Assembly: GCA_050575255.1 (NCBI GenBank)
Contig: JBNZDD010013687.1
Span: 3,447,377 to 3,511,376 of the forward strand
Direction: 5' to 3'
Length of the DNA: 64,000 nucleotides
DNA from: Harriotta raleighana
Taxonomy: Eukaryota
Below the pieces are notes generated by a model, which did not search any database, was not told the origin of the DNA, and was given only the letters and a program-made list of their open reading frames with translations. A program made the translations under genes and the position numbers. This document shows, in pieces, positions 26,188-38,049 of the stretch (its first letter is position 1; the number at the start of each line of letters is the position of its first letter).

Positions 26188-26403
26188 TCACTGTGTTCTG
26201 AAATTAAACAACGACGGCGTGGGATAATATCCGTACTGCGTTTATGCCAACGCCTCCTTGATGATACAGATGCCTGCTGTTTGGATGCTGATCGCCAGTC
26301 AATGCAACTTATTATTGTGAACCTGGAGAGAAGATGGGAAGCGATTATCATGCAAGCAGTGCAATGGCAGAACAGACTGCAAAGGCAACTTGGGAAAGAA
26401 AAG
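26188..26403 (+). CDS. AKAP6: AKAP6 internal coding exon (216 nt, phase 0/0), end of the last spectrin-like repeat
   Basis: ttttcctttag|TCA CTG TGT ... GAA AAG|gtaata. Translates SLCSEIKQRRRGIISVLRLCQRLLDD...MQLIIVNLERRWEAIIMQAVQWQNRLQRQLGKEK. Confidence 0.96.
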
Positions 26404-28754
26404 GTAATAATTCACCGTATAACAACAGAGTGTAACAAATGCACCCAAAGTTTGTTTTCCTTTTTTCCCCTCACCAATATGACCGATTCATATATGACCC
26501 ACGCTGCTGTTGGGAGGAGTATGTGTGTGCACCTATGTGTGTGTGTGTTTGGGGGGTGGGTGGGAATTATACCTGGACTAAATCTTTTCCTCATCTGACA
26601 ACTGCATACACCAACCGACCTTCCAGCAGTGGTCACTGGATAACAATTGGTACCTGAGGTTCTGGCCAATTTTCCACTCATTGAAGCCAGTTGTAGATGT
26701 GACTTATTTTTAAAGTCATGCTTCTAGTTCTGCTTTAATGATCAAAGTTAAATGGCAAGCTTACATATTCAATATAAATTCTAAAATAAATAGTAATAGA
26801 AATAATTAAAATAGAAATAAAAATAGAAATTATCAATTTTTGTTGTTAAAAAATGCCTTCCAACTTTTTTTTCCCCATGAGATCAGGTTTATTGTGTAAA
26901 ATTGTCCTCATAGAAGAGCTCTGAGATGTCACCAAATCAAATTTCTCCATTCAGAGCAGCTTTCAGGAACTTGCATTTCATTTATACGATCCACACCTGC
27001 TGCCAAATGATTAACCTGGTGGTACAGCACAAACCTGTCAATTCCTCCAAACAGATGGGTCATTAAAGCCTTCTACCTGCTTAACACATTCCAGTGGTTT
27101 TACTAGTTTCTGTGTAGACTATTGGGTCAGATGCCAAAAAGCATTTTGCTCTCTTCAGACCCCGAGGATATCTTTAAGGATCTTTTCAAGGGCATTGCTA
27201 CTTGTCCACGTTACCAGACCCCATTGTCTTTCTTTTCATACATGAAAACATTCACCATTACTGAAGAGGGAGAAGAGCCAGAAGTGTTTCCAGCGATATC
27301 ATCAGAAAATCAATACAGTTATTTGCAGTACAATGTTTTTTGTTGTGAATTGCATTATCATCTGTGTTTTTGACAAACAAATAAAAAATAAGTTTTTGGA
27401 ACACACATTCTTTTGTTCAGACATCTTTAAAAGATGTAACCAGCATACTCAGACATTTTTTTGAAAAGACTCTAGAGTTTAGATCCAGGTTTATCTTTTT
27501 GTGGTTTGAAAGCACCCGTGTACTAATGCGCCAATGTGAAATCATATCTGTGATCTCAATTTCACCCAATGGAGATTTTGATGGTGCTGAATAGCCTGTC
27601 ACCACAATTAGGGACAATCGTTTTTTTCTAAGCTACGGCTGTCTAAAGGGACTTATTTGATATATTCATTTCAATTTAACTTCTGTTTTTTTCAAAGGAC
27701 AAATACGTGGATGTTTGATGATAACTTCAGACACACAACATTACAAATAATATCACTCTTTGATCTTTTTTGCAGTGGGTCTATTTAAACAATTAATCTC
27801 TAAACACTTACAATTTCTAACATCTGATAGCACATATAGATGTGCAAAATAATTATTATAGTATTATTTTTCATATTTTCTTACAGCAATCTATTCCTTG
27901 CTCTTTAAAACATCCAACTTATGTAAATAGCTGCAGTAGTTACATTATTTATTGTTTGTTTCACACAGAATGCAAGGTCAGCAGGAACATTGTAGAAAAA
28001 AAGTAATGTTTTATTTGATTAAACTGATTGATTGAACTAACAGTTGTGCCTTTTATCATGCAGTAACAAACCAAGTTAGTCATTACTGTTTCCTTTATCA
28101 GCATGCAAATAATAAAACTCAATCTAATAAAAATTCATTAAGGTAGATGTAGAACATACCTAAGCAATTGTTAAATTCTCTTTTCTATTAGATTTACTGT
28201 CTTCACATGGTCATGAGTAGATCTTTTTGCTGTGAATAAACTGAAAAATCAAATAAGCCACTTAATTACTTCCCTAACCATTCTTTCAGAAATACTAGAA
28301 TTTTGTTGTATTTTCCAGAATTAAAATAAGTTGCCTATTAATATTAATCCTGAATGTTAACTTTATCCCAGGGCCCATATTTATTTATTGTGAACTCATA
28401 TTGTATTGCATTACAAAATAATGTTATTTTGTATTTCAATTTATTCAACTATCTTTTTTTTCCAACAATTTCATTCTAATCATACATTAAGTGAGTCAGT
28501 CAGGATTGCAGAGATGTTTAATTCTCTTTGAGTATACTTACTCTATTGGGATGGAAATATTTCTGTTATTAATTGGTCCTTCAATATTTTTTATTAATCA
28601 TATTTCCCTCCAGTCCCCTCCAAACCACCGATGCATTGTTGTGTTATAGTTCCACAAGTGCTGAGTATTCTCTCATACTTCATCTAAGCAGCGAACAGTC
28701 ATGGATTGAGTGACCAAATTCTTCTTACAGTATTTTAAAAAATTATTTATTATT

Positions 28755-28923
28755 TTGAAGGGATCTTTATTCCCAGAAAAGTGATCCACCAATCGACTAA
28801 TAAGCCAGGTCCTACTTACTGCTAGGTAAACAGAGGCGTGTGGAGTTAGGAAACTTGCCCATGGTTTTGCCCTGCCCAGGATTCAAACCCCGGTCCTCTC
28901 TCTTGTGAGGCAAGTGCTCTACT
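28755..28923 (-). mobile_element. tRNA-derived SINE fragment just upstream of the large AKAP6 exon
   Basis: Reverse strand reads agtagagcacttgcctcacaagagagaggaccggggtttgaatcctgggca (tRNA-like head with B box) followed by 'atgggcaagtttcctaac'. Confidence 0.6.
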
Positions 28924-28986
28924 CCATATAGTAAAGGAATACAACAATTTCATCAACTTTAAATATGAATTTTTGATCTTTTATAG

Positions 28987-31900
28987 ATCTCTTTAAGCTG
29001 CATTGAACCTGGTTCAATGGATTTAAACGTCTTTGGCGAAGATTCGCTGGAATGGGATGAGACTGACATGAGTAATAACCTAATTGGTATCCAAGATGAG
29101 CTACCTGACCTTGCATGTGAACAAAATAGCACACCACAATTATCACCTGAACCTTTGGAAAGTATTACTGATGAATTCATGCTTGATCGATATAGCAGTG
29201 GCCCTGGTGAATCACTGTATAGTCCTGGTGAAGCTCCTTTCTCATTAGGTGCACGCTTCTATCAAACCTACAATCTGCAGAATGTGCAGTTCTATGGAAG
29301 AGATCGGATGACATGTTTCAAAAATATCCCCACCTCAAAGTATCCAAACAGTTTAGTCAGGAGTAAAAGTAAAGATTCATCATTCTCATCCACCGACTCG
29401 TTACCAGATCTGTTAGGGGGCTTGACACCAGCCAAAGAAGACAAACCAACATCACAAGGGCCTTCTGAGAATGAGAGTGGAATTGTCAGTGAGGGTGATA
29501 CAGAAACTGCAGCAAACTCTGAAACCTCTCTTCCAAATCAAGTTGATCAATCTCAGATTCACAGCACTCCTAAACCTCTGCACCCCCTGATAGAGTTAAA
29601 ACATAAGGATTGTCTGATTAGATCGTGCATTTGTAAAAGACAGGGTTCTGTCGAAAAAAAGGAAGGAACGAATTCAGCAACAAAACAAAGAACAAAGAAT
29701 GAAGTTGAATCAACAAAAAATCTTCAGTCACTGTCTATGAGTAATGAAGGAAATTTACAGCCCTTTGATATTAATAAAATCACTCCAAAGGGTATTTCAA
29801 ATGATCTGGAGGCACAATATGATGTATTTACATTTTATGACTATTCTTATCTGCAGGGCCCTGAGCTTGAGTTAACTATGACTATAACTCACTCACCTGA
29901 AGAAAAAGCTACAGATGGCAGCATGTCCTCCAAGCCACATTCTGCTGAATATATTTGTAAAAATAAACTAACAGCTCCAGAATCTAAACCAGACTATAGC
30001 AAACCAGAAAAGAGTGCACCAGCGGTATCGGCAGGCAATCCTAAAACCTATTATAGTAAAGTACCTGATGTCAGAGTATCTCTAGATGTTACAAATGATA
30101 AAGAATTTACATTTTTGTCTCAGGGGTCATCAGTGGAATCGTTCTCCATTGCTGGTGATATATTCCAACTTGGACCCAGCAGCTATAAAAATGAATGTCT
30201 TCAACGCAGTGCTTCCTTAGAAAGCTGGTCCATTCCATATAAAGGCACAGAAGAGTTATTCAGCCATCATGGGTCAGGAGACATCAGTATGGGTAGTGAT
30301 TCCGTAGGGGAGCTAAGTAAGAGGACATTAGATCTTTTGAAACGATTAGAAAACATCCAAACTCCAGTAAGTCCAAAAATGAAACGCAGCATTTCTGACA
30401 TCACACTACAGAGTAACTCCCAAAAAATGTCGTTCACTGGCCAGCTGTCACTTGATGCAGCATCATCTGTCAATGAAGATTCTGCTGCTTCCCTGACAGA
30501 ACTAAGCAGCAGTGATGAGCTCTCTTTGTGTTCTGAAGACATAGTTGTTCATAAAAATGAAATTTCAGATTCCAATGCATTGTTCAAAAAACATACCAAT
30601 CACTCGGTGACTGACGAAGCTGATGTCAATATAAGTATGATTGTCAATGTGTCCTGTACTTCTGCTTGTACAGATGAAGAAGATGATAGTGATTTGCTTT
30701 CCAGTTCAACCCTTACACTAACTGAGGAAGAACTGCACATCAAAGATGATGATGACTCCAGCCTTGCCACAGATGATGAGATTACTGAAGAAAGTAATAA
30801 CATTTTAGACGGAAACTATATGAGGAGTGAATTTCATCAGTGGCTTAAACCAAACTTTTCTATCACAAAGGAAAAGAAAAAATTGGATCCAGGTGAAAGA
30901 GTTCAGTGCAGGAAAGAGTCAAGTACTGGGTTATCCACTCTCAAACATATTTCGAGTCTTTATCCATTTTTAAACAATTCTGGACTGATGCTGCCAGAGT
31001 GTAAAGAAAAGGCAAAGAGCACCTCACTCTGTCACAGAGAGAAACATTTTAAACAAACCAGTATGGTCCCTGTGAAACATTTCTGTACTGACAATTTAAG
31101 TGATGATGTAGAGAATGGCAATGTGGCAAAATGTCCACTAAAGAGCAAGAAAGAACTAAGAGTTTTGGACAGCAAAAGATTTTATGAAAAGGAAGAATAT
31201 ACTAGCAATACTCAGAATACAAAATCCTCGAAATTTGAATTCTCTAGTCGACCAGGGCAACAAAAAACAGATATTTCTACCACCTCATACATTCCAGCCC
31301 AGTTTCCCACACAATCTCCACAAAGGAATGAATGTCATGCATGTTTTGAAGACAGCGGGAGTGTGAAGAAAGTTTTACCTTCCCTTGCTTTTGATTCTGA
31401 TGATGAGATTATTTTCTCAGAGAAGCCTGTAAAATATGATGTTGGTGTGTTAAATGGGAAAATAGCTCCAACGTGTGAAAATAAGCGAAAATGCCAACAT
31501 CACGACACAAGTGCAGAATTACTGTATAATTGCCAAGGTGATGAATATATTACCAATGAAGTTTCAGCTGAAAAATCTGATGCTATTTTGTGCTCATCTC
31601 ATCGTAATTGTGAAAATAAACAGTTGGAAGAAGCTAACAAAGATGATACAAAGATTTTTTCAAGTTGTATCTGCCATTCTGATATGTCTCAGAGTATCGA
31701 TGGCGAAGAAGACAGTTCAGTTCACAATTTTGTGATGGAGATAATTGATATGGCATCATCAGCTCTGAAAAACATCTCGCTGCATGACTCTGACATCACC
31801 AGCCCAACATCAGTGGCTCAGATTAAGGAAAAAGTGTTAGAACATTCTCACCGACCGTTGCAGCTTCGAAAAGGGGACTTTTATTCTTATTTGTCCATCT

Positions 31901-32739
31901 CATCACATGACAGTGACTGTGGTGAGGTGAACACTTGTATGGATGAGAAAAGCACCACTCCACTTCCTTTGGATTTCAGTGATGAGTTCAAACCAGATAA
32001 CAGTGCTGAGGATGAAGCCTTTCTTGATGAAGATTTTGAAGAAAAATGTACTGATCATCCTTGTGTATTTAGTTTTGCACTTCAAAAAGAGACAGTTTTA
32101 GATAGAATTCCATACTCTTTGTCCAAACCCGTATCATTTCCTGACAGGAAACCATTGTCACTGCCAAATGATAGACTGGAGGTAATAGTGCCAAAAGTTA
32201 TTCATGCAACACCAAATGATCAGAAGATATTATGTGAAGGAAATCTAATTAAAACAAACAAAATTAGTCGTAACATAAAAACACTTTTAGGCCTCACTGG
32301 TCAAGTAGATCATAAATCTGAAGACAGTATTGCTCCCTCTCTAGAGTGCCATATTGAGGCTCCGTACATTAATCCTTTGCTGCTTAAAAATCAGATGGAC
32401 AATACTGAGTGTTCATCAGATGATGAATCAATTTTTTCTACATGTAAAATTGAAATGCCTGAACCCAACTATACTCAATTAAATATTGAAGAAGCTGAAA
32501 ACCGTAAGTCAGTGAAACAGCCTCACGAAATGAGAAGTAATCTAGTGAAGAACACACAGCCAAATGACAGTCATTTTGAAAAAACTGGAGACAATCTGTT
32601 TATTAGCACTAAAATCCAATTCCCACAACATGGATATCCTGAGTATGAAAATTGCCAAGATATGGAATATGAAATGGAAGACACGCTTTACAAGAAAGAG
32701 AATAATGGCGATTGCGGGTTTGACTTGTCTCAAGAAGAG
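28987..32739 (+). CDS. AKAP6: AKAP6 large coding exon (3753 nt, phase 0/0). Without splicing it reads through to TAG at 32758-32760.
   Basis: ttttatag|ATC TCT TTA, in frame with ORF 29017..32760. Contains AKAP6 motifs SKDSSFSSTDSLPDLLGG, ESGIVSEGDTET, DVFTFYDYSYLQG, SVGELSKRTLDLLKRLENIQ and KEKVLEHSHRPLQLRKGDFYSYLS. Consensus donor GAG|gtaagt at 32740. Confidence 0.95.
31720..31770 (+). other. AKAP6: PKA RII-binding amphipathic helix of mAKAP
   Basis: VHNFVMEIIDMASSALK, matching the mammalian mAKAP RII-binding segment VHNFVKEIIDMASTALK as recalled. Confidence 0.85.
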
Positions 32740-32838
32740 GTAAGTTATATGATCTATTAGATCCACCATTCAGAAATGGCTATACGCTAATTCTCTATTG
32801 TGCATCTGTCTTTGCCATAACTAAAATGGAAATAGTAG

Positions 32839-32844
32839 AATAAA
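32839..32844 (+). terminator. Candidate polyadenylation signal for the unspliced, KASH-less AKAP6 end
   Basis: AATAAA about 80 nt after the read-through stop at 32760. The context is AT-rich, so it may be chance. Confidence 0.35.
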
Positions 32845-33598
32845 AATAATTATTTTAAATTGGTACCACATCAAAGCTTAAATTGGAGAATGCCTCAAAT
32901 TAGTCTTTTTCAAACAATATATTTATTCTTAATTGTGATTGTTATAGAATATGAAATGGGATAATATTAATATCCGATGATCTAATGCGTCATTTCTAAA
33001 GACCATATAGTTAAGTATTGCTTTAAAACACAAGCATGTTTTGTTTGTCCAAGCAGAATGAATGTTTGAATGAAGTTAGCATTTTAATCCCATATTTCAT
33101 GTAAAGGCATAGCTAGCATGAACCTTTGTAAAAATTTAAGATGTCACTTGACAGTTCCTATCTGTTTCTTTCTCTTGTTGTCTCTAAGAACTGGTCATTT
33201 CTAGAATTACTCTCTTAACATTCACAAAGTGCAGATAACAGTAAAAGTCCACACCTACAAAACAATGACATCACTAAAACAATTCACAATGAATTTAAAG
33301 GATTAAGATGCTTGACATTTTGTAGTCTATTAAAAGACTTAACACGGATTAGCAGCATTGTGTATTTAATAAAAAGATTATGGATATTCCCCGTGAATGC
33401 TATGATAGTAAGACATTCAAAAGTACGGTCAAAGAATACGAGTTATGTGTATAAAGAAGATTTACTATGATGGCTTTTATGATGCTGTATAGCTTAACTA
33501 AGTGTTATTGAAACTAAAGTTGTGTTTATGTTTCACTTTTTATTATGCCATTGGTGGAATCAGAGTAATAAATAGTAATACACTTTTCTGATTTTCAG

Positions 33599-33739
33599 AT
33601 TCCTAGCTCTTCAAAATTTATAAAAGGGAAACCCAAGAAAGCTAAGAACAATAGAACCACTGGTGATAACCTTACTGTTTGTGCTTTCCATCATAACGAA
33701 TCTCTGCATGACTCTCATGCTGCAAGATCTGTGCCCAAG
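33599..33739 (+). CDS. AKAP6: Candidate AKAP6 cassette exon (141 nt, phase 0/0)
   Basis: Strong acceptor cttttctgattttcag|ATT, open frame IPSSSKFIKGKPKKAKNNRTTGDNLTVCAFHHNESLHDSHAARSVPK, donor AAG|gtatag. A second donor gtgagt at 33748 lies past an in-frame TAG. Confidence 0.55.
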
Positions 33740-34463
33740 GTATAGATGTGAGTTGAACAAACATTCTTTCTAAAAATGTGAATATTCAATTGATTAAGAA
33801 ATCTTGGCACAATTGTCAGATGAGTTAGACATTCTCTAGGGAATCAATGCGCTTTGGAATCAGAAAATAGCTCTTTTTTCACCATGATTGTAAAAGCCTA
33901 AAATAGCAGTCTACATGGTGGCATGATTGATTTATAATCTAGCCTAGGTAAAACTACATTGTTAATATACAAATTTCCAGAATAGATGGTTAGATTAAAT
34001 AACTAGTACTGTAAAAATTATTACTGGCGGTTGGCTTTTTTTTCTGATGCAACTGCCTTAGCATCCCACAGTTTGAAGATAATATGATTAGGGGAAAGGA
34101 ATGTCAGCACTCCCAATTTCTCCTTTCCAACAAGCTGCCTTGAAAAACAAGAATGAATTTGTATCTGGTGTAAAACAATAAGCCTTTAGTTGTTGTCGCC
34201 TTGCAAAATTGCCAGTGGACAATGGAAATCTATCTCATTATGACCAGTATGTACACTATTCTGCTTGTGTATTAAGTTTTTAAAAATATATAATTCACAA
34301 ATTCCCTTATAAATAGTTGATCGTTGCATAATTAAGCCAAAATCTATTTAATACATAGAGTAATCTTTATAATTTACTTCCTGTTCTGCTTTGTTGCTTT
34401 CTGGATTCATTGCTTACAGCTCTTCCTTTACTTTTATATGTCATTTTTTTTATATAAATGTAG

Positions 34464-34498
34464 AGGTCAGTAGCAGCAAAACAAGATCAAAGGCAAAG
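34464..34498 (+). CDS. AKAP6: Candidate AKAP6 35-nt micro-exon (phase 0 to 2) bridging to the KASH exon
   Basis: Long pyrimidine-rich tract, then tag|AGG TCA GTA GCA GCA AAA CAA GAT CAA AGG CAA AG|gtaact. It supplies exactly the phase shift needed to enter the exon at 35370 in frame. Confidence 0.65.
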
Positions 34499-35369
34499 GT
34501 AACTAGCTAGATCCAGATATTTCTGCCTAATTTGGAAGGCGAATACATGCATGTCTGGAGTGCTTCCTAGAAGCTGTAGAAGAGATGTACTTTGCGTTAA
34601 TCTCTTCGGCTGCATTCTGACAGTCATTTCTTCATAATCCTCATCACAAGCTCCTGCACTTTGCTGCATGGTTTAATTATCCCAGACTGACTCCTCACTG
34701 TGGAAATCAAACCCTATGGCTGGCCAGATGTTATTGCTTTCTTGCTCCCAGATATAGAAAAAACCTGAAGTTTAACATATAAATATATACAGAGTGGATA
34801 TGAAAGAAATTAATTTGGAAGTGTCTATAATAAATATACAGTATTTGATTGCTACATTTAGGTCACTTACTTTATAAATAGTTTTAATGACTTCAGGTTT
34901 TTATAATCATTTGGGGCCCAATGATTGCTGCTTTATGTATCCACTATCACTGGGCTTGCTTCAATCAATGTTGTTTTCATATTGACATATGTATCTGAGG
35001 GTGTTGTCTGCATATTGAAGCTCATAGATGAGGATGAATGCAGGAAGGTCACACGTGACAGATTACTAACTTCCCTAGTGAAGTTATTATTAAAAATTGA
35101 TAAAGCCCTGAACAATAATTCAATACTATTATAATTTATTTTTCCAAACACTTTTACTGTCATTTCTACTTTCGAATATAATGTTTTGGGCACATGCTTA
35201 TAAATAGCTCAAGTAGTTGTTTACTGGTAATCCTAGAATTCTGCTAAATAATGCAATCATGTTTTTTAAATATTTGTAATATTACCGATATAGAATGGTG
35301 ACAAAGTAATGGTTTATAATTCTGTATTGTCCCTGACTACAACATGAATTTGTCTTTCTTTCCCTTCAG

Positions 35370-35649
35370 AAATCTGGCTGTATCCTTGCTCCATTTTTGT
35401 CCACCTATTCCCAAGGTAGCCTCTAATCATATTCAGTCAACCTCTTCCTCACTGATATCCAAGTCAAGCTCTTTCCAAATGCGAGTTTTTCATGCAGGTG
35501 TGATAATCTGGTTGCTTCTGCTGATCCTTTGTATGGCAATTGCTATAACTCCCTTGTTTGTAATACCATCAGATTGCAGCAAAGTTCGGCTGTTTTCTTC
35601 TTCATGGACTCCTGTCCTAAGCTACCTCCAAGGACCCCCTCCATTCTGA
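35370..35649 (+). CDS. AKAP6: Terminal exon encoding a KASH domain (35473-35646), most likely the last coding exon of AKAP6
   Basis: Strong acceptor tctttctttcccttcag|A (phase 2). Ends FQMRVFHAGVIIWLLLLILCMAIAITPLFVIPSDCSKVRLFSSSWTPVLSYLQGPPPF-TGA: a hydrophobic TM segment plus a luminal tail with PPPX at the C-terminus. The KASH call is strong; assignment to AKAP6 is inferred from splicing. Confidence 0.85.
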
Positions 35650-35847
35650 TTTAAAGTTTATTAAATGTCCTGCTTTTTGTGGCAATAGGCATTTTTTGAT
35701 ATCTAAAGGAATATTATAGCATTTGCATTTACAATACCAAGATGTAATTTTGTTTAAATTTCTGTAATGGCATTTGATATGAATGCATTTGGAATATATC
35801 AGAGTAATATGGTACTTGGAAATTATTGGGGCAATGTGTCAACTTGA

Positions 35848-35853
35848 AATAAA
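35848..35853 (+). terminator. Candidate polyadenylation signal after the KASH exon
   Basis: First AATAAA about 200 nt after the TGA at 35649. Others occur at 36485 and 36506. Confidence 0.35.
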
Positions 35854-38049
35854 ACAACTGTTTATCATGCATACACATGCATATGCAAACAAAAGATGTT
35901 GGCCAAGTTGTGTTAACTGTGCTTCATCTGTCAAGCGGAACCCTGGATTTTATTCAATAATTTACCTTTAGTTATTAAAATATGGCAAGTAACATATTAC
36001 TTAAAAGAAAAATCTGAAGTTTATATTGAGTAACAATTATAATATATTGATACAAACATGTAAGCAAAGTTAAAACAATATCAACATAGAATTCACAGAT
36101 CGAATCTATGCAATACTGAAACTCTAAAAAAAAGTAATTGAAAAAATTGTTCTACATTGAAATTATAGGCATTTCATTTGGTTCAGTACCATCATTTTCT
36201 TATTTGCTCTTAAAGGGAAAAAGAAAGAAATGTTTTAACAATGTGTGCCTTGCTGTATTTCTTATACCTTTTGTTAAAAAGCTGCATTTCCCTGAAGAAG
36301 TTGGTTTAAAGATATGGTATAGCAAGATTAGGCTGTGTGTATAATTTCTGTACATATGTAGAAGAAAATGCTAACATTGATGTATATGATATACAATGCT
36401 TTCTTGTTTTGTGTTAACTTGTCCAGTGGTGTAGAAATATTAAGCCTTAAACTGTTAGATTGCATGGGTAAATTAAAGTTGGCAAATAAAAATAATTTAT
36501 CAGACAATAAAGTGGACTGAGTTATTGGTTTTCAAAGATACAGTAACATTTTCTAAAGAAGAGAAGCTAACAGTGGTCTACGCTTTTGGTATTTAATACT
36601 TTGTGTTAAAGGGAGAAAATAACATAAAATATTCAATGATATAATTGTTGTGAAACATCAACAGTGTTCAAGATGACACTGATCTCCCCTTCTCCTTCGA
36701 CCTAATCAACATAAACATTACAGTATTTCTTACACTGCTTTTTAGCACTCGGGAGGCCAAGCTGTGACATCACAAAGAGATCGAGATATTCTACAGTTGG
36801 AAATCCCATTAAGTGAACATACCCACTGTAAATCAGCACTAAAATTGTTCTTTATTAGTAAAAAGAATTACCAACATAATTTGAATGTTTAATTTCATAA
36901 CAATCTAACAGCGAAGAATTAAAGAAGATTACAAGAAGATTAAATCTGAAGACAAATAGGTAAGATAATTTTTTTTATAAAGGTATTAGAAGAGATTTAA
37001 TACAGATGCAGAAAATGAATGATTTTTAGATCTAGGCAGAATAAATGATTAATAAGATTAATAATAAAAATGAACACAACACCCATCCTTGCAGTTGATG
37101 TTAGGAGGATGTCTCAAAACCATTTACAGGAATTACGGCAAAGTGTAGTGACTGCATATTACGTAAGTAGATTGGCATAATGTTATAAAAGAAAATTGGG
37201 AGTTGGGAGGAAAAAAATGTAATTGAAATTACAGCTAAGATTTTAAAAAAATCATTCATAAAGGAAATGTTTAAACAATTAATTGACAAAAGATAAAAAC
37301 TAGAGAGAAATTGTAATGTATAGTAAAAAAAATTGGGAAGATTAGTTATAGTTTAATTTATGCTGATTATTTATGAGGTTATTTGAATTGATTCTTCATA
37401 AGGAATTGTGGGATCATTACACAATGATGATTTGGGTATTGAAAGAATGTGTAGAGAAGATATTTGATTATTAAGTAAAATTACCTATGTAAAAACTATT
37501 GCTATATTTAAGGCACTATTTAGAATTTGTTACAGTTAGATTGTATTCAAATTTGTGCGAGAAATAGCCTTATCTTTGTTATAATGTTTTTTGTGTTTAG
37601 TTGAGGTCAGGTTCACAATTGCAAATAAGTATGACCAATAATAGTAATGTGCGGAATTACACAAACAACCAAACAAAATTACCTTTATAGAGTGCCTTTC
37701 ACATCAAGAGGAAGTCCCAACACGCCGATATCAAGAATGTATTGGAATCTGAAGTTCAGATGAATGATTTATTATTTTAAATTAAAGAATATTCATGATC
37801 CCTACAAAAACAATCATTGTAACAGATCTACTTCTTTTGGCAATTCATCCAAAAGATGGAATTTAGGAACAGTAGAATACAGAGATTGTCCTATTTAAAC
37901 CCCTGCCTAACATTTCCATTGTTGCTTTGGTACATTTGTAAAACTTCACTGCCATCATATGCTACAATTTCAGTTTACAGTATTTAGAGTTTTTGGAGCA
38001 CACTAAATGTTAATGCTCTAATCTTTTAATCTTCTAATATTGGATGCAT

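Follow-up and report, generated by a model that had tools for sequence, protein, structure and literature searches.

The terminal AKAP6 exon of a holocephalan is predicted to encode, in one of its frames, a KASH tail chosen by splicing

In the window analysed here (the whole stretch of 64,000 nucleotides), AKAP6 appears to end in a KASH domain. Its terminal coding exon (35370-35649, plus strand) encodes, as judged from profile and peptide alignments, a true KASH domain in one reading frame. We consider it likely that the 3' end of this gene offers a splice-selected KASH C-terminus which would bind SUN proteins, and that the KASH form is older than the lamprey split. This reading starts from what was observed directly: the domain itself, the layout of the exons, splice joints between this exon and AKAP6, three classes of tail and conservation among species. 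A preliminary description of the same DNA had placed an exon with a strong acceptor 2.6 kb past the large AKAP6 exon on the same strand. We located the acceptor at 35369/35370 (tttctttcccttcag/A), 2.63 kb downstream of the end of the large exon at 32739 (GAG/gtaagt).

Read from 35371, the exon gives NLAVSLLHFCPPIPKVASNHIQSTSSSLISKSSSFQMRVFHAGVIIWLLLLILCMAIAITPLFVIPSDCSKVRLFSSSWTPVLSYLQGPPPF with the stop codon next, a product of 92 aa closed by TGA at 35647-35649. The Pfam KASH profile (PF10541) matched this product with an E-value of 6.5e-10 and 39.6 bits (curated gathering cut-off 23), aligning product residues 37-92 with profile positions 3-58 of 58. The Kyte-Doolittle mean (19-residue window) peaked at 2.86 over VIIWLLLLILCMAIAITPL, residues 44-62, and the hydrophobic stretch is followed by 27 residues and the stop, leaving a single transmembrane segment at the extreme C-terminus. 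Both checks agree with the KASH domain proposed earlier. SUN2-KASH structures have assigned SUN-contact roles to the PPPX end, Tyr -7, Leu -9, Pro -11 and Cys -23 of KASH peptides. Counting from its last residue, the tail presents Cys -23, Phe -17, Ser -14, Trp -13, Pro -11, Leu -9, Tyr -7 and a GPPPF end, and thus keeps every KASH position that had been listed, with Trp as the aromatic residue at -13. Its final 24-25 residues match the KASH peptides of nesprin-2 and nesprin-1 (PDB 4DXS, 6R15 and 4DXR) without gaps and with flush C-termini, and Cys -23, Pro -11, Leu -9 and Tyr -7 are identical in all three, with Phe -17 and PPPX also kept; the E-values of 0.25-0.82 are weak owing to the shortness of the peptides. 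Open-frame length was rejected as evidence, as the 64-kb window holds 31 stop-to-stop frames of at least 100 codons. What stands above chance is the HMM match together with the cross-species conservation, not the length of the ORF.

The window contains the 3' half of AKAP6 (mAKAP): residues 1069-2671 of Callorhinchus milii AKAP6 isoform X1 (P0010) map to it at 75-96% identity (tblastn), co-linear with six exons (Table 1), and the source is a holocephalan close to, yet distinct from, C. milii. The large exon includes a conserved stretch, VHNFVMEIIDMASSALKNI...RKGDFYSYLSISSHDSDCGE, which we take to be the PKA-binding region, and shares 57/91 identical positions with the lamprey protein P0001 (E 9e-32). 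One could ask whether the name AKAP6 reflects pipeline naming only, the gene being instead a paralogue of the nesprins (SYNE) or a neighbour joined in error. Spectrin repeats plus KASH are the definition of a nesprin, and the Pfam Spectrin matches of full-length relatives are weak (24.3, 26.6 and 30.8 bits against a cut-off of 29.9). We find this hardly credible, given that the conserved region of the large exon matched 564 proteins (E <= 0.001), the named ones among the 120 listed all being AKAP6 (from mammals, birds, reptiles, amphibians and fishes), and that the window exons are co-linear with C. milii AKAP6 and joined by RNA. That the exon belongs to the AKAP6 unit, as had been suggested, is also borne out by named AKAP6 models with the same tail. 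P0010, P0129 and P0023 each have Spectrin and KASH matches in Pfam, which speak to architecture only and not to descent. The Pfam scan of the large exon returned no family. An Rfam search of 33500-36700 gave one sub-threshold SNORD100 match (20.2 bits against 58), taken as chance, and a tRNA scan of the whole window gave none.

Table 1. Positions in the window of the AKAP6 exons and of the features of the terminal exon (splice junctions are marked by a slash, intron letters in lower case).
Feature	Position	Strand	Evidence
AKAP6 exon, spectrin-repeat region	10229..10375	+	P0010 residues 1069-1117, 88%; cag/GGATAC, TTAGAG/gtatgt
AKAP6 exon, spectrin-repeat region	12805..13029	+	P0010 residues 1115-1192, 93.6%; tatcag/AAAACC, TTCAAG/gtaaca
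AKAP6 exon	26188..26403	+	P0010 residues 1193-1267, 96%; cctttag/TCACTG, GAAAAG/gtaata
Large AKAP6 exon, 1251 codons	28987..32739	+	P0010 residues 1265-2521, 91.6% over 1257 residues; phase-0 donor GAG/gtaagt
141-nt exon IPSSSKF...HAARSVPK, phase 0 to 0, upstream donor AAG/gtatag	33599..33739	+	P0010 residues 2515-2567, 75%
8-nt extension GTATAGAT, downstream donor GAT/gtgagt	33740..33747	+	RNA joints; shark and ray RefSeq isoforms ending ..VPKV
35-nt micro-exon, encodes RSVAAKQDQRQ(R)	34464..34498	+	aaatgtag/AGGTCA, GCAAAG/gtaact
KASH-coding part of terminal exon, TGA included	35370..35649	+	PF10541; 93.5% to C. milii X1 tail, 81.7% to Heterodontus
Skip-frame reading (micro-exon absent) KSGCILAPFLSTYSQGSL, then TAA	35370..35426	+	Translation; joint 33739>35370
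Transmembrane segment AGVIIWLLLLILCMAIAITPLFVI, 24 residues	35494..35565	+	Kyte-Doolittle 2.86
Luminal tail of SUN-binding type (by sequence) PSDCSKVRLFSSSWTPVLSYLQGPPPF, 27 residues, Cys -23, Tyr -7, PPPF	35566..35646	+	Alignment to nesprin KASH peptides
3' UTR	35650..36511	+	RNA coverage; AATAAA at 36485-36490 and 36506-36511

Splicing was followed in RNA runs X1, X3 and X7, from three related species that are about 3-7% diverged from the source species rather than from that species itself; joints were listed when seen in at least 3 reads or one contig, with about 27% of X7 sampled. Five intron joints, all GT..AG, were listed within 32739-35370. The large exon is joined to the 141-nt exon (32739>33599) in X1 and X3 contigs and 32 X7 reads. 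Joint 33739>35370 was found in 7 X7 reads, 33747>35370 in an X1 contig and 11 X7 reads, and 33747>34464 in an X3 contig and 3 X7 reads, while the joint from the micro-exon to the KASH exon, 34498>35370, is also present in RNA of the related species. In all X7 pairs the first mate lay on the minus strand, as is usual for plus-strand RNA. RNA thus ties the KASH exon to AKAP6 exons (33739>35370, 33747>35370, 34498>35370), with 32739>33599 leading back to the large exon. An RNA link from 32739 to 35370 through intermediate exons had been named as a check; the joints to AKAP6 exons were found, but the KASH-specific joint 33739>34464 is absent from those listed at this threshold and sampling of X7. 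That joint is suggested by conservation and by RefSeq models of nine cartilaginous fishes and the lamprey. The terminal exon runs from 35370 to about 36500: X7 depth drops from 45-65 to 5.9 and then 0.5 across 36425-36621, and contigs end at 36484 (X1) and 36466 (X3).

Three tails can be read from these exons. Donor 33739 with the micro-exon gives KASH; donor 33739 with the micro-exon skipped gives KSGC..GSL-stop, the tail of shark and ray RefSeq isoforms ending ..KKSGCNLAPFLPTYSQGSL; and donor 33747 adds Val and an in-frame TAG (33743-33745) to end in ..VPKV-stop. The KASH frame needs two choices, use of the upstream tandem donor and inclusion of the micro-exon, which makes KASH one of three possible C-termini. 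The opening 57 bases of the terminal exon (35370-35426) code in two frames. The micro-exon peptide exactly fills an 11-residue gap in the P0010 mapping, and the models of C. milii, Heterodontus, Heptranchias, S. torazame and Mustelus all carry it unchanged.

KASH-tailed AKAP6 was also found in 12 RefSeq models, all automatic predictions, from nine chondrichthyan species (C. milii X1 and eight elasmobranch species). A 1600-aa AKAP6-like model of Lampetra fluviatilis has a KASH tail as well (Pfam E 6.9e-07, 29.9 bits), although its end reads PTPV in place of PPPX and the stretch from Cys to the end is shorter by one residue. Among the relatives' models scanned, Pfam KASH was detected in 3 of 4, with E-values of 5.6e-08, 2.9e-08 and 9e-05 and scores of 33.4, 34.3 and 23.1 bits (cut-off 23), the last one, from a stingray tail, being barely above the cut-off. 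The last 32 residues are identical to C. milii (32/32) and nearly so to seven shark models (28-29/32), against identities to sharks of 63-65% in the large exon and 45-48% in the 141-nt exon. The preliminary description had left its claim to stand or fall with the ORF in related species; the KASH frame is open in all 11 aligned sequences, chimaera to lamprey, with the last 32 residues constrained. Substitutions among the tails are conservative (I/V, L/F, S/T), and every KASH-tailed model shown preserves both the 35-nt length of the micro-exon and its peptide. The signature DCS..R.FSSSW.PVL.Y is common to the window and lamprey tails and absent in nesprin-type matches.

Against these data one must weigh that the KASH frame could be a conserved, essentially untranslated AKAP6 3' UTR, or a rare by-product isoform. 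The real proteins would then end in ..PKV or ..KSGC..GSL, and maximising open frames would have produced the RefSeq KASH isoforms as artefacts. Every RNA joint listed leads to a KASH-less reading (33739>35370 in 7 reads, 33747>35370 in 11), the joints into the micro-exon come from donor 33747, past the TAG, and a 3' UTR block near 36225-36300 that matches the P0015 tail is very conserved, so conservation at the DNA level does occur locally. Untranslated DNA, however, would not hold a 92-codon frame open in eleven sequences, match a nesprin-built profile at E 6.5e-10 or end exactly in PPPX-stop, and the conservative substitutions and constant micro-exon length also argue against it. Moreover, the reads are too few to rule out 33739>34464: with 33739 used by 7 of 18 micro-exon-skipping reads (39%), chance alone would assign all 3 micro-exon reads to 33747 in about 23% of cases. 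We therefore regard an untranslated or by-product frame as unlikely, and a translated, splice-selected KASH tail as the better reading.

X7 depth was 11-28 in 33740-35369 and 40-65 in the exons, which indicates intron retention. An X3 loose end hints at an extra donor near 33949. Nesprin genes produce short KASH isoforms from internal promoters, and the exon might likewise belong to a small KASH protein of its own, produced through such a promoter or from an intron-retaining RNA, such as the 101-codon ORF from the ATG at 35344. This ATG is in the KASH frame, 26 nt upstream of the acceptor; 33864-35242 is transcribed (X7 depth 11-28), and one X1 contig is unspliced from 33718 to 35399. Yet the ATG sits in intron sequence, in a retained-intron RNA its ORF would lie far downstream of the main stop, and no read-start pile-up was reported within 33740-35369, the sole one listed being at 36465. 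In nine species, in addition, both NLAVSLLHFCPPIPKV upstream and the peptide of the micro-exon are conserved as AKAP6-joined sequence. These points make a separate protein quite improbable, and we return to the KASH exon as an ending of AKAP6.

The age of the KASH form can be approached through its distribution. We searched the 92-aa peptide against 1.84 billion protein representatives and obtained 7 matches at E <= 0.001; two of them, P0002 and P0003, were discounted as low-complexity repeats. Only 3 of the 119 AKAP6 representatives listed have a KASH tail, all from cartilaginous fishes, and no KASH tail was found among the bony-vertebrate AKAP6 proteins listed. A search with the lamprey tail matched only itself, and the clusters examined for Chiloscyllium, Hemiscyllium, Amblyraja, Leucoraja, Narcine, Mobula and Pristis held no KASH-tailed model. 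Shark KASH isoforms are masked by KASH-less cluster representatives, so a blank in the search with the 92-aa peptide says little. The tails of ray-finned fish AKAP6, K[KR]xSGxLAP, align with the skip-frame tail. Judging from the lamprey model, the KASH form predates the divergence of lampreys and gnathostomes; bony vertebrates appear to lack it, and protein models point to a loss there. The lamprey tail and the KASH-less bony-vertebrate proteins listed thus favour the earlier suggestion of an ancestral state that was later lost.

The tail had also been presented as unrecognised. This is right for the papers searched (including PMC8523159, PMC13632692, PMC3646009 and PMC4284225), in which no description of a KASH-tailed AKAP6 was found, but not for databases, since the tail already sits in RefSeq/UniRef models with a precomputed Pfam KASH match. 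The AKAP6 tail is a new addition to the KASH family that was already visible in databases.

AKAP6 and the nesprins both reside at the nuclear envelope of muscle and neurons. Nesprin-1 and nesprin-2 (SYNE1, SYNE2), and nesprin-1alpha especially, resemble AKAP6 in having a spectrin-repeat body and a C-terminal KASH, and the best Pfam and PDB matches of the AKAP6 tail are nesprin-1/2 KASH. Outside KASH, in contrast, the sequence is AKAP6 and not SYNE. In its luminal part the tail carries a distinct signature, DCS..R.FSSSW.PVL, is without the acidic EEDYSC stretch and has only 11-13 of its last 32 residues in common with nesprin-type matches. Nesprins are reported to generate KASH-less variants by splicing around KASH exons (Rajgor 2012, PMC3388047). 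The switch in AKAP6 differs from this in combining a frame-shifting 35-nt micro-exon with tandem donors. Mammalian mAKAP/AKAP6 is the orthologous gene, with matching large exon, conserved region and spectrin-repeat exons, but the mammalian, bird and reptile proteins listed end in ..ERHINMHR without a membrane segment, and the fish gene has three more exons and the KASH option. According to a 2026 review (PMC13632692), AKAP6beta is localised through binding to nesprin-1alpha in all cell types studied. Nesprin-3, nesprin-4, KASH5 and LRMP/Jaw1 were absent from the seven representative-search matches and from the four PDB matches of the tail. These four are tail-anchored outer-nuclear-membrane adaptors ending in a SUN-binding peptide, and to our knowledge none of them is a kinase-anchoring scaffold.

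The splice choice would then decide where the scaffold resides. Joining donor 33739 through the micro-exon (34464-34498) to 35370 would give AKAP6 with a KASH tail, presumably translated in the source species and tail-anchored in the outer nuclear membrane. By analogy with nesprin-1/2, its luminal tail may bind SUN1/2 trimers, including the Cys -23 disulfide, which would put the PKA scaffold directly on the nuclear envelope as part of the LINC complex. Splicing 33739 directly to 35370 would read the other frame and stop 18 residues on; with donor 33747, which carries the TAG (..PKV-stop), the remainder would be 3' UTR. Both of these proteins would be soluble and dependent on a partner, as mammalian mAKAP is on nesprin-1alpha.

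In heart muscle and neurons, mAKAP is the textbook scaffold for perinuclear signalling, and its nuclear-envelope address has, as far as we know, always been explained via nesprin-1alpha. A KASH tail on AKAP6 that is absent in mammals suggests that the protein probably started as a nesprin-like membrane anchor. We hold in even balance the broader proposal that AKAP6 originated as a fifth nesprin. On this view, the ancestral vertebrate would have possessed a PKA scaffold with spectrin repeats, its own SUN-anchoring KASH tail and a splice switch for its release; of the readings of that last exon, only those lacking KASH would have survived in bony vertebrates. The need of mAKAP for nesprin-1alpha would be a remnant of a nesprin-nesprin partnership, and the cAMP/PKA signalling of sharks and chimaeras would be coupled directly to LINC. 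The frame-shifting micro-exon is notable by itself as a splice switch that makes 57 bases dual-coding. If true, an ancestral KASH tail would explain the spectrin repeats and the nuclear-envelope location of mAKAP, and a kinase scaffold would join the short list of vertebrate KASH proteins. The KASH-on and KASH-off isoforms of one gene would then be a natural experiment on direct LINC attachment and perinuclear cAMP signalling.

Translated in the frame from 35371, the exon downstream of the large AKAP6 exon reads NLAVSLLHFCPP...FQMRVFHAGVIIWLLLLILCMAIAITPLFVIPSDCSKVRLFSSSWTPVLSYLQGPPPF, followed by TGA. Residues 37-92 of this 92-aa peptide match positions 3-58 (of 58) of the Pfam KASH profile PF10541 (E-value 6.5e-10, 39.6 bits, curated cut-off 23 bits), confirming the domain that the preliminary description had read there. 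The transmembrane stretch it had noted scores 2.86 on the Kyte-Doolittle scale (19-residue window). Regarding the extreme C-terminus, the last 24-25 residues align gap-free and flush with the nesprin-2/nesprin-1 peptides of 4DXS, 6R15 and 4DXR, all co-crystallised with SUN2; the E-values are weak (0.25-0.82) because the peptides are short. The tail keeps Cys -23, Phe -17, Pro -11, Leu -9, Tyr -7 and PPPX, as had been listed. Open-frame length was dropped as evidence, with 31 frames of at least 100 codons in the window, and the weight of the KASH call is borne by the profile match and conservation, not by frame length. On all sequence criteria tested, the tail classifies as a member of the KASH family.

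When the peptide was compared with 1.84 billion representative proteins, the best match (E-value 1.8e-07, 48% identity) fell at the C-terminal end of a protein of 1600 aa, annotated by NCBI as 'uncharacterized protein LOC144943219 isoform X1 [Lampetra fluviatilis]', itself with a Pfam KASH tail (6.9e-07). This lamprey protein shares 57 of 91 residues (E-value 9e-32) with the large exon, over a stretch that we take to be the PKA-binding region. A query with that region retrieved 564 proteins at E <= 0.001 and, among the matches listed (120 of the 564), those named by their source are A-kinase anchor protein 6, from mammals to sharks. By tblastn, residues 1069-2671 of Callorhinchus milii AKAP6 isoform X1 (XP_007891570.1, 2671 aa) are co-linear with the window. 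This mapping, at 75-96% identity, identifies the gene at the sequence level as AKAP6 of a holocephalan related to, and distinct from, C. milii, and the KASH exon as part of it.

Features of the AKAP6 locus and splice joints in RNA of related species
Feature	Position	Strand	Details
C. milii isoform X1-matching exon	10226-10375	+	88% identity
C. milii isoform X1-matching exon	12796-13029	+	94% identity
C. milii isoform X1-matching exon	26188-26412	+	96% identity
C. milii isoform X1-matching large exon	28987-32742	+	91.6% identity
C. milii isoform X1-matching exon	33581-33739	+	75% identity
C. milii isoform X1-matching terminal exon	35368-35646	+	93.5% identity
Large exon end	32739	+	phase 0, GAG/gtaagt
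141-nt exon	33599-33739	+	phase 0 to 0
Second donor, 8 bases downstream of first	33747/33748	+	GAT/gtgagt
35-nt micro-exon	34464-34498	+	aaatgtag/AGGTCA...GCAAAG/gtaact; RSVAAKQDQRQ plus two bases
Terminal coding exon	35370-35649	+	strong acceptor tttctttcccttcag/A; TGA stop
Joint	32739>33599	+	GT..AG; X1 and X3 contigs, 32 X7 reads
Joint	33739>35370	+	GT..AG; 7 X7 reads
Joint	33747>35370	+	GT..AG; X1 contig, 11 X7 reads
Joint	33747>34464	+	GT..AG; X3 contig, 3 X7 reads
Joint	34498>35370	+	GT..AG; X3 contig, 4 X7 reads

The RNA evidence comes from relatives, none of it from the species of the window, and was aligned over 31500-37400. It comprises contigs of organism A (sets X1 and X3, about 6% different) and stranded raw reads of organism C (X7, mostly 95-99% alike, of which about 27% were read); a DNA-like contig of organism B (X6) covers the whole region. 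The first mate of every X7 pair maps to the minus strand, as is usual for plus-strand RNA. The splice joints link the exon to AKAP6 exons, as had been proposed, and the KASH exon is therefore the last exon of the AKAP6 transcript. Its 3' UTR is about 0.85 kb long, with coverage dropping in 36425-36621 and AATAAA at 36485 and 36506.

The reading frame of the last exon depends on how it is joined. If 33739 is spliced directly to 35370, it reads KSGCILAPFLSTYSQGSL, with a stop at 35424-35426; inclusion of the micro-exon moves it into the KASH frame, so that its first 57 bases are coding in two frames. Use of the second donor adds GTATAGAT, which encodes Val followed by an in-frame TAG (..VPKV-stop). 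The micro-exon peptide exactly fills an 11-residue gap in the tblastn alignment and recurs without change in the models of C. milii, Heterodontus, Heptranchias, Scyliorhinus torazame and Mustelus. Counting against the KASH reading, the listed joints into the micro-exon come from the donor after TAG (33747), and the KASH-frame joint 33739>34464 is absent among the joints listed for the relatives' RNA, with about 27% of X7 covered. If donor choice is independent of the micro-exon (donor 33739 being used in 7/18, 39%), chance alone would place all three micro-exon reads at 33747 about 23% of the time; with such small counts and this share of X7, the lack of the joint is uninformative. Depth over 33740-35369 is 11-28, versus 40-65 in exons and 2-3 in the first intron, so much RNA retains the interval. 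Before 34462, one X3 contig has a loose end similar to the window sequence at about 33918-33949 (ending ..ataatctagcctag/gtaaaa), a hint that organism A joins a third donor, near 33949, to the micro-exon.

Of 64 candidates obtained with the C. milii tail as query, four cluster representatives are KASH-tailed: C. milii isoform X1, Heptranchias perlo, Heterodontus francisci and Hemitrygon akajei isoform X3. Members of ten clusters add Carcharodon carcharias (isoforms X1, X3), Cetorhinus maximus (X1, X4), Scyliorhinus canicula (X1), S. torazame (X1, X3) and Mustelus asterias (X1), bringing the total to twelve models in nine species of cartilaginous fish, with the lamprey in addition. The tail classes number three (KASH, ..KSGC..GSL of the micro-exon-skipping frame, and ..PKV); Carcharodon, Cetorhinus, both Scyliorhinus and Mustelus have models of each, and several further species have models of two. 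NCBI's pipeline generally includes alternative isoforms only where transcripts support them. Over the last 32 residues, the window is identical to C. milii at 32, to seven shark models at 28-29 and to the stingray at 22; identity to sharks elsewhere is 63-65% in the large exon and 45-48% in the 141-nt exon. The KASH frame is open in 11 of 11 aligned AKAP6-type tails, with conservative substitutions, and the pattern DCS..R.FSSSW.PVL.Y is common to lamprey and chimaera and absent from nesprin-type hits. We consider the KASH tail real, being well supported in sequence, gene structure and conservation.

Among the matches listed, and lamprey aside, 3 of 119 AKAP6 representatives show either a hydrophobic segment in the tail or a PxPx end, and these are all from cartilaginous fishes; neither feature occurs in about 91 named bony-vertebrate entries (hand count). 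The members read from Latimeria (isoforms X1, X2) and Lepisosteus (X1-X5) likewise lack a KASH tail. Amniote AKAP6 ends in ..ERHINMHR. Ray-finned fish tails (..AKRxSGxLAPPxxKPxP) align with the shark skip-frame tail, and this one alignment suggests that the last exon survives there in a KASH-less reading. The stingray tail barely passes the Pfam KASH cut-off (23.1 bits), and that of the lamprey ends in PTPV, one residue shorter. Within the clusters read, we found no KASH-tailed model in Chiloscyllium, Hemiscyllium, Amblyraja, Leucoraja, Narcine, Mobula or Pristis; Rhincodon, Pristiophorus and Rhinoraja were covered by the cluster representative only. None of the carpet-shark models read (Chiloscyllium, Hemiscyllium, Rhincodon) has the tail, which could reflect lineage-specific decay of the KASH frame or incomplete models. 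The Chiloscyllium punctatum model P0015 (chiPu_0002548) follows the last exon in the KASH frame up to FQMRVLQAA and then departs. In Narcine bancroftii AKAP6 isoforms X1 and X3-X5 (P0162-P0165), the extended donor adds an in-frame VED, not V-stop, before the skip frame (..VPKVEDNPGHILAPFLPTYSQGNI); the tandem-donor switch is therefore variable among rays.

Within the AKAP6 3' UTR, chimaera and bamboo shark seem almost identical over 36225-36300: compare ..KKCFNNVCLAVFLIPFVKKLHFP from window ORF 36138-36344 with ..KKCFNNVCLAVFLTPFVKKLLFP from the P0015 tail. This block is probably a conserved non-coding UTR element, mistranslated in the P0015 model. Further downstream, 37085-37160 is a short interspersed repeat (X6 word depth about 810 versus about 50 elsewhere), where many contigs and loose ends meet. 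Just upstream of the large-exon acceptor, 28800-28930 looks tRNA-derived or SINE-like by eye (..ggttttgccctgcccaggattcaaaccccggtcctct..); ARAGORN found no tRNA anywhere in the window. Positions of about 3504-3680 are all N, either as an assembly gap or by masking.

The KASH-tailed AKAP6 models share the architecture of nesprins, spectrin-like repeats plus KASH. Nesprin genes likewise yield KASH-less variants by splicing around KASH exons, according to the available part of PMC3388047. A 2026 review, in the portion available, has AKAP6beta localised via nesprin-1alpha in all cell types studied (PMC13632692); the accessible passages of PMC3646009 and PMC4284225 take the same view, and in these portions of the three papers mAKAP is treated only as a nesprin-1alpha partner. 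Full-text literature searches found no paper giving AKAP6 its own KASH; apparent 'shark' matches were, where checked, an author's name. The claim that the tail was undescribed thus stands for the papers searched and fails for databases, as the tail is already present in RefSeq and UniRef models, for which a Pfam KASH match has been precomputed.

Insertion of the KASH isoform would be of the tail-anchored type, with SUN1/2 retaining it in the outer nuclear membrane through its luminal tail. This would make AKAP6 itself a LINC component bearing PKA and its remaining partners. Both isoforms without KASH would be soluble; switching between the forms would depend on which of two donors, 8 bases apart, is used and on the frame-shifting 35-nt exon. 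For biologists working on the LINC complex or on AKAPs, the AKAP6 KASH tail holds solid interest.
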